A stretch of 62,851 bases of DNA, from the NCBI GenBank assembly GCA_002269645.1, contig NIVC01000560.1, forward strand, positions 1-62,851. Reading direction: 5' to 3'. The notes beneath the pieces are model-generated. The model saw nothing but the letters and a program-made list of their open reading frames with translations, did no database searches and had not been told where the DNA came from. Positions 21,470 to 62,851 of the stretch are shown here, piece after piece; the stretch's first letter is position 1; every line of letters begins with the position of its first letter. Origin of the DNA: Macrostomum lignano (lineage: Eukaryota). A program made the position numbers and the translations under genes.

Positions 21470-24400
21470 ATGAATTACATCACTCAGGATAGTTTCGAGA
21501 GCAATGTCCGCGTTGCTGTGCGCATTCGCCCAATAAGTAAAAAGTGAGTTCGTTATTCGAGTTCGTGCTAGAATAATGTATAATTTAATTAAGTAATTAA
21601 GTAATAAGTTTTAATAACTAATTAGTATTTCAATCCCTAATACGCACCATTTGTGAATCTAGTAATATTTACCATTGAATTAAGGATTTACTGTTTTTAA
21701 ACAGTAAATCATTGCATCATAAAATAATTAAATTAATTTGCCTCTGCTGCTAGTGAGGATTGTCGATGGAAGCTTGCAAACGAAGCGAATGTCATTCGCT
21801 TTAATATACTATCCGAAATTCTTAATACGTCTATTTTAGAGAGGAAGACACCAGCGCCAAAGAAATTATCACTGTTGTCGGCAACTCTTTACACATTCGA
21901 AATGTTAAGGTAAATGAATATCTAAGCTAGTTGAGCTTTGCAAAGGAATTAAGCCGATCTAAGATCATATTCAATTATGTAATTTCCATCTTTTTTTCTT
22001 CAGATTGAGGGCGATGCGGAGATCGGCGACAGTCGGGAAAGACTCAAGACTTTCACATTCGACTACGTCTATCCGCAGTCAGGAGATACAGACAGCGAGC
22101 TTGTAGGCTCCCAGGAGCAGGTGAGCTTCAACTGCATAATATTCATAGCAGTAGATGCAGTGTTTGCAGTCATAAAATTTCAAGCTTCCTTTAACCTTCA
22201 GTTAGAATTTGATGGAGAGTGATGAATCAACATTTCTGCACTGTGTGGGTGTAGATTAGGGGGTTGGGGCTGATGCGGCATGTAACAAGTTGGAGAGGTT
22301 CGCTTCTGTAGGCAGGTCTGCTTGCAGCGGCGCTGGAAAGAGGTTTCTGCCGCGCACTTGTCCCTCAGACCTCCTCTCTATCCCCACCCAGTCCTTGTCC
22401 GTCTCGATCGCTTACAGTGTAATTCGCTTCCATCGAAAGGAACCGCGTTGACTTAGAAAGAGAAACGAATAATGGAAGCTAATTATGCTTACACAACAAA
22501 ATAATATTGGCTTAATGCTTTGCGGTCCTGTTGGATGCGTTACAGGAATTTATAAATTTATTCATACACGACCGCGCGGAGTCGCTGGGCGTGACTCAAG
22601 TCAATAAGTGTGGAGAGAGAGAGAGTTGCGTGCATAGCGTCCATAGCAACTGCCGGGGAAACGGACTTCTTCAAGTGTACAGGCAAAGAAGGCAGGCTGA
22701 TTTTTTAGCTTGCTCCCCCACCAGAAGCTTGCAAGAAAAGTTGCACTGTTTTTCAACCGCTTATTTCGCATTTGCGCAGTTTTGCGTACATCTTTCTTAC
22801 CGCAGTTATTTTTACCAAAACCCTCGATGTAACTCTCGATGTAACCCTCGGTTCTACATGTAGATAATGGAAGCGATAAACAAAAAATCAAGAAATTTCA
22901 AACAAAAATTCATTATCTGCGTAAATTTTTTTTAATTTCAAACTTGCTCAAGATGGAGTTTCAACGCGCTTCGTTTGATGCGATTAAGTTCTATGTGCAC
23001 AATTTTTTCTATGAATTTGTCTTGTAATAATTAGTTTACCTGCTGGGCTGAGTATAGTGCTGCGTAATTCTGTTACGTATGTCTTGTCTTAGGATCAAGA
23101 GCAACTCTTTTTTTTCTGTAGTGGTGTACTCCAACTACTGTACACCTATTATTCTCCGTCATTTACCACATTTACCACTGCAGATCTTCCAAGACCTCGG
23201 CACCGACCTGCTGGAGAATGCTTTCGACGGCTACAACAGCTGCGTGTTCGCCTACGGCATGACCGGCACCGGGAAGTCCTACACCATGATGGGCTTTGAG
23301 GTCTGGACCTGCCATGGATGTCGACGGGTGCATGGTTTTAGGGGTTTGGGAAGGTCACGCAGGGGTGGGCAGTTCTTTGAAACTTTACAATAGCAATCCG
23401 GGCCCGCACGCGGTTTGTGTCTATTCTCAGCTATCTATTCTCTCGATCCTCTTATCTTGTCTCATCCCATCTCTTCTCTCATCTCTCATCTCCATATGAA
23501 TTTTTTATCCTGGAAAAATTCCAAGACAAACTCTTGCATTCCTTCCTGGAAGTTTGACATTTTGGTGATTTTTGGTCCAATTTCCAAAATGCTGTCAAAG
23601 ACAAGCCTCGCCATTCGGTATCTCTTGCCTGTTTGGTTTCTTTCAACCCTTGGCAATGGTGGCTCGGAACAACGAGGTAGCCGCGTTTCAGGATACACGT
23701 CATGCGGAGGCACTATACTATTATATTTCGAGTGTCTATGCAGTCCAGCAGTAGGTATACTATATTTACCATCCAGGTCCCTACTGTATACGGGTGGATC
23801 CGACGCACAAACACCGATATATCCATACAGACTGCATTAGCGGCCGGTGGTGAGTCACAAGTGCGCCTCTCACGCGGTGGTGTACAGGCAAAACCACAAA
23901 CCTGATGCATTTGTACGGCCATCCAGTGCGAAACGGCCTAAAGTTTGATGGCTGCAGAAAGTTTCCCTAGGGGGGGGGGGGAACAGGAGTGGCAGACTGA
24001 TTGCTGCTGAAATTCGATGCGTTGACCCGGGGAAATCTGTTTTCAAAGCCATTATTAGTCAGCTTATCAGCCTTTGCTTTGAGGTTTTCAGACGGTCTGG
24101 GTCGTGCGCAAACCTATTAGATGTTAATTAGCAATTATCACCCTAATACTGTTTCAGGAGCAGCGTGGACTCATACCCAGGATTGCTGAGGTGAGCCAGT
24201 CGAGCATGGATTATCCAAGGACTACTCTAGTAACATATGTAGGACGCTACACTCGAAATCTATGGTAAATGTTTTGACGGCAACTTTTCGCCGAAAAATA
24301 CACTACGGAGATAGGAAATTTCACGATTTTCAACACTAAAACAATGATTGGGTCTCTTAACAGTGTCAGAGAAAGTCCTAATCACACTATTTTGTGCCTC

Positions 24401-62851: not shown

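Follow-up and report, generated by a model that had tools for sequence, protein, structure and literature searches.

The locus BOX15_Mlig029284g1 of the free-living flatworm Macrostomum lignano raises the question of where a kinesin gene ends. The stretch analyzed here (the window) is a complete 62,851-bp contig, NIVC01000560.1, of the Mlig_3_7 assembly (GCA_002269645.1, NIVC01). GenBank ends the coding sequence (CDS) of this gene at a TGA codon at position 58383 and gives its product, 2,177 amino acids (aa) long, the title "hypothetical protein" (P0123). A second reading frame opens just before that stop and is still open where the contig ends. We consider it likely, with a probability of roughly 0.7, that BOX15_Mlig029284g1 encodes a kinesin-3 of the STARD9 clade whose frame runs on through a one-nucleotide break and a repeat array, giving at least 3,666 aa (~404 kDa) in the window, and is continued on a second contig, NIVC01000762.1.

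The Mlig_3_7 assembly was built from PacBio data with Canu and polished with Pilon, using Illumina and RNA sequencing (RNA-seq) reads, and its GenBank annotation is a StringTie/TACO transcript assembly guided by RNA-seq, with CDS called by TransDecoder (PMC5730564). The exons encoding the motor, neck, and FHA regions were located by tblastn with kinesin-3 proteins (KIF16B/STARD9 homologs) on the plus strand between 21,500 and 46,500, and splice sites were curated by hand with homology as the guide. The resulting chain, which includes one exon of 27 nucleotides (nt), later proved to agree with the GenBank protein: 23 exons from 21470 to 52352 (4,189 nt), together with the exon running from 56041 to the TGA, yield a translation identical to the annotated protein, and all 23 introns are GT-AG. 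A protein search with the curated chain returned a single entry, BOX15_Mlig029284g1, which is 2,177 aa long, carries the kinesin and FHA domains of Pfam, and matched with both identity and coverage at 100%. The initial annotation had counted 24 exons and 4150 nt, close in number and size and the same in phase. A gene finder based on dynamic programming over codon usage and splice sites called too many or too few small exons, according to how introns were penalized, and was dropped; among the exons that it favored, 38279-38425 was spurious and 55237-55414, which is unannotated, was dropped as well. Exact look-ups of the window open reading frames (ORFs) at 56001-58382 and 49061-51109 in the contig index returned no record, and no paper with the locus tag turned up in a full-text literature search.

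By an in-phase splice, exon 23 joins a giant exon that begins at 56041. The boundaries on either side of exon 23 read CTGG/gtgagt (51108/51109) and acag/GCATTC (52282), then ATCG/gtgagt (52352/52353) and tttacag/GCGAC (56041), all of them in phase, and the junction is present in the RNA-seq-guided GenBank model. The initial annotation had joined the motor to position 56041 by just such an in-phase splice, and in this it was right; it had also presented the junction as one that had been missed, which does not hold, as the GenBank annotation already contains it. The exact consensus and retained phase of the last donor and acceptor are not what a blind merge of transcripts would leave. It is for this reason very improbable that the ORF between 56 and 63 kb is an independent gene, tied to the kinesin only by an artifact of an annotation pipeline that does join adjacent transcripts under certain conditions (PMC5730564). 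An ATG at 56001, just upstream of the acceptor, would speak for a separate gene, but the sequence 5' of 56041 is AT-rich and intron-like, and a kinesin deprived of the giant exon would have nothing but low-complexity sequence at its C-terminus.

The head of the protein is that of a kinesin-3. The Pfam motor domain (PF00225) was matched with an E value of 4.8e-101 over profile positions 1-327 of 327, with switch I (SSRSH) and switch II (DLAGSE) intact, and an FHA domain (PF00498; E 8e-10) lies downstream of the neck coil. The kinesin-associated region between neck and FHA (PF16183; E 0.0023) scored 18.5 bits against a cut-off of 29.5 bits, with a query that carried a spurious 49-aa exon. Exon 22 contains a strongly heptad-like stretch. 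The P-loop, encoded in exon 4, reads YGMTGTGKS, and its Met stands where all 117 homologs with a recognizable P-loop (117/117) have Gln; to judge from the motif, this replacement may alter nucleotide handling.

Our phylogenetic analysis of the motor domain (neighbor-joining, 37 sequences, 200 bootstraps) grouped the window motor with spiralian sequences of Watersipora, Lottia, Patella, and Biomphalaria in 157 of the 200 replicates. The clade that unites the window, these spiralian sequences, and vertebrate STARD9 was recovered in 196/200, and a grouping of the window with KIF16B/Klp98A in 0/200. The kinesin-3 of KIF16/STARD9 type that had been proposed for this locus can accordingly be narrowed to the STARD9 side, even though many of its nearest spiralian matches are named "KIF16B" in databases.

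Downstream of the FHA domain, the giant exon has two frames that lack stops: frame 2 between 55938 and 58382, and frame 0 between 58369 and 62850, at the end of the window. The chance probability of a stop-free run is ~7e-32 for 1,494 codons and ~5e-17 for 781 codons. There is exactly one frame break in the exon, as the initial annotation had described it: coding in two frames, with a single break, and open at the end of the window. Removal of one A from the A4 run in the short stretch where both frames are open (Table 1) produces an uninterrupted ORF of 3,666 codons from the ATG to the contig end (~404 kDa). It is because of this 1-nt break that the GenBank CDS ends where it does, leaving ~1,490 codons (58386-62851) outside any CDS annotation. 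The region following the FHA domain would thus be several thousand residues long, with at least 3,666 codons in total if the break is read through, against 2,177 aa as annotated, and the protein is probably far longer than its database entry. The earlier figure of at least 3,650 aa, close to the codon count to the contig end, is correct only if the break arose by faulty assembly or as a recent lesion, which is likely, not proven. A short intron spanning the break was considered and rejected: no credible sites are present, and the best candidates would excise at least 400 nt of clearly coding sequence.

The first ~480 aa encoded by the giant exon are low-complexity sequence rich in Ser, Pro, and Gln, after which the translation becomes helical. 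Past the break, a unique region is followed by one diverged copy of a ~313-aa unit and then by an array of near-identical 939-nt copies that is cut off by the contig end; from 60790 to the window end, the copies differ by 1 mismatch. The unit contains sub-repeats of ~120 aa, the array modules are acidic, and a single-sequence AlphaFold2 model of the repeat unit was all-helical with a predicted local distance difference test (pLDDT) score of 73. Foldseek comparison of this model with the PDB gave nothing below E 0.3, and Pfam gave nothing meaningful on the whole tail; a DUF5053 match (28.7 bits) was a sum of repeat matches and was discarded. An N-capped helix motif (L-S/T-x-E-E...) that seemed to recur throughout the tail was, by regular expression against shuffled sequences, enriched only in the array and the diverged copy and not around the break, so we make no claim of motif continuity across it.

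A word-indexed protein search with 58369-60768 found no homolog, and when 1,072 aa from the tail were compared exhaustively by phmmer with 1.84 billion representatives, two relatives only (P0121 and P0122) and no STARD9 were returned. The expectation of a lineage-specific tail bearing a repeat array was thus borne out, the 939-nt unit being real.

The first relative, P0121, is an annotated M. lignano protein of 1,320 aa on contig NIVC01000762.1, comprising the last repeat copies and a 3' end. This contig begins inside the array and carries ~7.2 copies of a 924-nt unit (1-6670), which differs from the 939-nt unit of the window only in lacking 15 nt (EKAAA) and in 1-nt indels at scattered positions. 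In 3/6 full copies a G is missing in TTTTGGAGG, e.g., TTTTG(G)AGG. Such indels break the frame about once per copy, and the GenBank model begins only after the last break, so that ~4.6 kb of array is without coding annotation. Past the array (ALEKLTDNMKESL lies beyond it), the ORF continues for ~570 aa of low-complexity and coiled-coil sequence and is followed by three small exons and a TAG stop. Because P0121 reads the array and splices to these 3' exons and the stop, we take the array frame to be protein-coding.

Each half, the window and NIVC01000762.1, is on record on one contig only, and the window ends in the array in which the other contig starts. The simplest reading of these complementary ends is a single gene split by the assembler, and the two contigs probably represent one gene with a total length of ~5,800-6,500 aa; GenBank treats BOX15_Mlig029284g1 and P0121 as two unrelated hypothetical proteins. 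The extension in the 3' direction that the initial annotation had called for did lead to a stop, on a contig whose link to the window is inferred, but not to the START or PX domain anticipated at the C-terminus. Neither domain was hit by Pfam in the 653-aa C-terminal region of P0121, in seven downstream ORF segments (>=100 aa) of NIVC01000762.1, or in the window tail, a negative that presumes NIVC01000762.1 to be the 3' end of the gene and that covers its small downstream exons non-exhaustively. The giant exon, which had been taken for a terminal one, is probably not terminal, given the three small exons and stop that come after it on NIVC01000762.1.

The second relative, P0122 (NCBI MEE4247509.1; JGI metagenome 3300040801), lies on a 1,032-nt contig filed under a metagenome-assembled genome of Kangiellaceae. 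Its 915-nt (305-aa) unit shares 43% aa identity with the flatworm repeat across the whole unit and is a perfect tandem (117/117 nt). The P0122 contig is most likely the sequence of a related flatworm that was mis-binned into a bacterial genome. An array that is read by P0121, conserved as protein, and homogenized within each genome points to concerted evolution, by which its uniformity would be maintained.

What, then, caused the frame break? Indels in homopolymers occur elsewhere in this assembly. In a single-exon, PIM-like Ser/Thr kinase at 21-1005 on the plus strand, the Pfam Pkinase domain changes frame at a C5 run (TACAGCCCCCGAGTGG, ~524-528), so that profile positions 4-164 and 176-258 fall in different frames, and the repeat copies of NIVC01000762.1 differ from each other only by 1-nt indels, with zero substitutions. 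Given these parallels, we consider the break most likely to stem from faulty assembly, namely a residual long-read indel, or, at the most, from a lesion that arose very recently in a single genomic copy.

Several observations weigh against our reading of the gene, and some of them favor a frameshift that is real in the window copy, in which case the product would be the annotated 2,177-aa kinesin and the 4.5-kb ORF a freshly disabled remnant or untranslated 3' sequence. Polishing with Pilon, which drew on both Illumina and RNA-seq reads, is expected to repair an indel in a unique region; TransDecoder and GenBank both terminate the CDS at 58383; and the AlphaFold2 model across the break, at pLDDT 44, is uninformative. 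In the DV1 genome, duplicated blocks of >=95% identity add up to 180 Mb and relax selection on single copies (PMC5730564), and a line that carries additional copies of chromosomes could plausibly harbor a freshly disabled remnant. We nevertheless find a real frameshift unlikely, since the 1,494-codon ORF begins only 14 nt before the stop, so that any lesion must be very recent, since like indels are found in this assembly where error is certain or where a conserved domain would be disabled, and since another organism shares the array, conserved at the protein level. The link between the contigs has its own difficulty: the EKAAA-encoding 15 nt of the window copies is absent from all copies on NIVC01000762.1, so the contigs do not simply overlap, and the two could be homeologous copies in a partly duplicated genome. 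Finally, with Met in place of an invariant P-loop Gln, normal motor or ATPase activity is not to be assumed.

The position of the stop also invites the idea of a programmed +1 ribosomal frameshift at UGU-UGA-A, by which a single mRNA would encode the kinesin of 2,177 aa and also a giant product of read-through, at least ~6,000 aa long and with nine or more perfectly homogenized 313-aa helical modules. A ribosome that passed over the U in the stop codon TGA (58383) would indeed land exactly in the long frame, which is already open just 14 nt upstream, but no stimulatory element was seen, with no test aimed at one, and a homopolymer indel, being documented in this assembly, explains the same facts more simply. 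We know of no flatworm precedent and hold this to be the least probable of the explanations discussed.

Taking the gene, then, as one frame that passes the break and continues on NIVC01000762.1, how does it compare with known kinesins? Human STARD9 has 4,700 aa with a kinesin motor, an FHA domain, a very long central region, a dileucine signal, and a C-terminal START domain (PMC10203878). The M. lignano protein resembles vertebrate STARD9 in its N-terminal kinesin-3 motor followed by FHA, a motor that stands with the other spiralian sequences as sister to the vertebrate STARD9 clade, and in being giant, with most of its length between motor and C-terminus and largely on one huge exon. It differs in the lack of START from the searched parts of its C-terminus (NIVC01000762.1), in a tail without detectable sequence similarity to any STARD9, in the near-perfect 313-aa tandem array, and in the P-loop Met for the invariant Gln. 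KIF16B and Drosophila Klp98A are proteins of ~1,300 aa with a C-terminal PX domain. The M. lignano protein shares with them the combination of kinesin-3 motor, FHA, and coiled coil, but its motor falls outside their clade, no PX was found in any part of the tail, and it is several times larger. Since neither START nor PX was found and the tail has no similarity to STARD9, we regard this protein as a STARD9-clade kinesin-3 with a lineage-specific tail rather than as a STARD9 ortholog in the full domain sense; judged from its sequence, it is a giant kinesin of the STARD9 clade whose repeat tail is specific to its lineage.

Table 1. Exons of the kinesin gene, frame break, and tail features in the window (positions in NIVC01000560.1).
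Feature	Coordinates	Strand	Evidence or remarks
Exon 1	21470..21543	+	Start ATG 21470; identical to N-terminus of BOX15_Mlig029284g1
Exons 2-7, motor/neck	21840-21909, 22004-22120, 23184-23300, 24158-24190, 24817-24994, 27583-27652	+	tblastn, splice sites, Pfam kinesin, GenBank match
Exons 8-13, motor/neck	27736-27808, 27888-27955, 30937-31037, 31130-31309, 36435-36532, 38121-38195	+	tblastn, splice sites, Pfam kinesin, GenBank match
Exons 14-15, post-neck region	39420-39473, 42670-42714	+	tblastn; GenBank match
Exons 16-17, FHA	45195-45348, 46279-46481	+	tblastn; Pfam FHA; GenBank match
Exons 18-21	47433-47524, 48094-48120, 48427-48480, 48557-48723	+	Splice sites; GenBank match
Exon 22, 2,068 nt, coiled coil then low-complexity	49041..51108	+	Donor CTGG/gtgagt; GenBank match
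Exon 23, 71 nt, bridge to giant exon	52282..52352	+	Both splice sites consensus
Giant exon, annotated CDS part (frame 2)	56041..58385	+	Ends at TGA 58383-58385; protein end ...HRTLISKIC
Frame break, sole stretch with both frames open	58369..58382 (14 nt)	+	TCTCCAAAATATGT; A4 run 58374-58377
Giant exon after break, unique region (frame 0), no CDS annotation	58378..59789	+	~470 aa
Diverged first copy of ~313-aa unit	59790..60789	+	25-57% identity to later copies, increasing toward 3' end
Array, 2.2 near-identical copies of 939-nt (313-aa) unit	60790-61728, 61729-62667, 62668-62851	+	Cut off by contig end

Tandem repeats account for 37% of the window, in agreement with the description of the genome (PMC5730564), and a minisatellite lies inside almost every intron of the kinesin gene. 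Among these are a 2.9-kb array with a 13-nt unit (27993-30879) and a 4.3-kb array with a 42-nt unit (31372-35718). Several tandem arrays of the window yield long spurious ORFs. Upstream of the gene, an interstitial telomere-like CCCTAA array was found at 5846-6445, exons of a beta-lactamase-fold (LACTB-like) gene at 8080-10180 on the minus strand (Pfam PF00144, E ~1e-18 for two ORFs), a C2-domain ORF at 11752-12174 on the minus strand (Pfam PF00168, E 6.6e-07) that is probably an exon of another minus-strand gene, and minisatellite-rich ORFs at 12996-13852. An Rfam scan of the window gave no match. On NIVC01000762.1, downstream of the gene stop, three similar blocks of ~3 kb occupy 12300-18800, with ORF segments starting RRLGAAGWRSRC at 12503, 15438, and 18452; long trinucleotide arrays lie at 16150-16660 and 19720-20055, and Pfam reported a curious match to CBM_5_12, lacking any significant stretch, in one of the downstream ORF segments.

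The finding is mostly one of annotation repair in a draft genome. The kinesin gene, its exon chain, and the junction between motor and giant exon had been public before. The additions made here are the likely continuation beyond the frame break, the repeat array, and the probable link of two fragments into a gene of ~6,000 aa, as well as the placement in the STARD9 clade of a kinesin in which START was not found. Two fragmentary "hypothetical protein" entries would be repaired into one gene, and homopolymer indels in Mlig_3_7 are flagged.

The following picture of the protein is consistent with these data. A head of motor, neck coil, and FHA, encoded by 23 small exons with minisatellites throughout the introns between them, is joined by splicing to the giant exon. 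The frame would continue past the break through a unique helical part of ~470 aa and the single diverged copy of the repeat into near-identical, acidic, all-helical modules of 313 aa, and then, via NIVC01000762.1, through ~7 more copies and ~570 aa to the three small exons and the stop, with neither START nor PX. From kinesin-3 biology in general, such a protein may be a plus-end-directed microtubule motor that dimerizes through coiled coils. Its anatomy suggests that the tail could act as a very long spacer or scaffold of variable copy number, composed of a disordered part, a helical part, and at least nine identical acidic helical modules, and the short C-terminal coiled-coil region might bind cargo. 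The view of the tail as a molecular "ruler or tether", offered in the initial annotation, is speculation. We also put forward, only tentatively and at a little less than even odds, that this is the largest kinesin described, at ~5,800-6,500 aa, with a STARD9-clade motor in which START was exchanged for a helical array that varies in copy number.

Should the frame prove unbroken and the two contigs adjoin, the M. lignano kinesin, at ~6,000 aa, would exceed human STARD9 in size. It would combine a conserved STARD9-type motor and FHA head with a tail that has no relatives outside close kin, that carries an array of identical 313-aa helical modules, and that is without a lipid-binding domain. The giant-tail architecture of the STARD9 branch would then be older than the vertebrates, and the tail and the cargo end would have been freely replaced. 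Transgenesis and RNA interference exist for M. lignano, and the gene would thus provide a genetically tractable animal in which to ask what such a long tail does.

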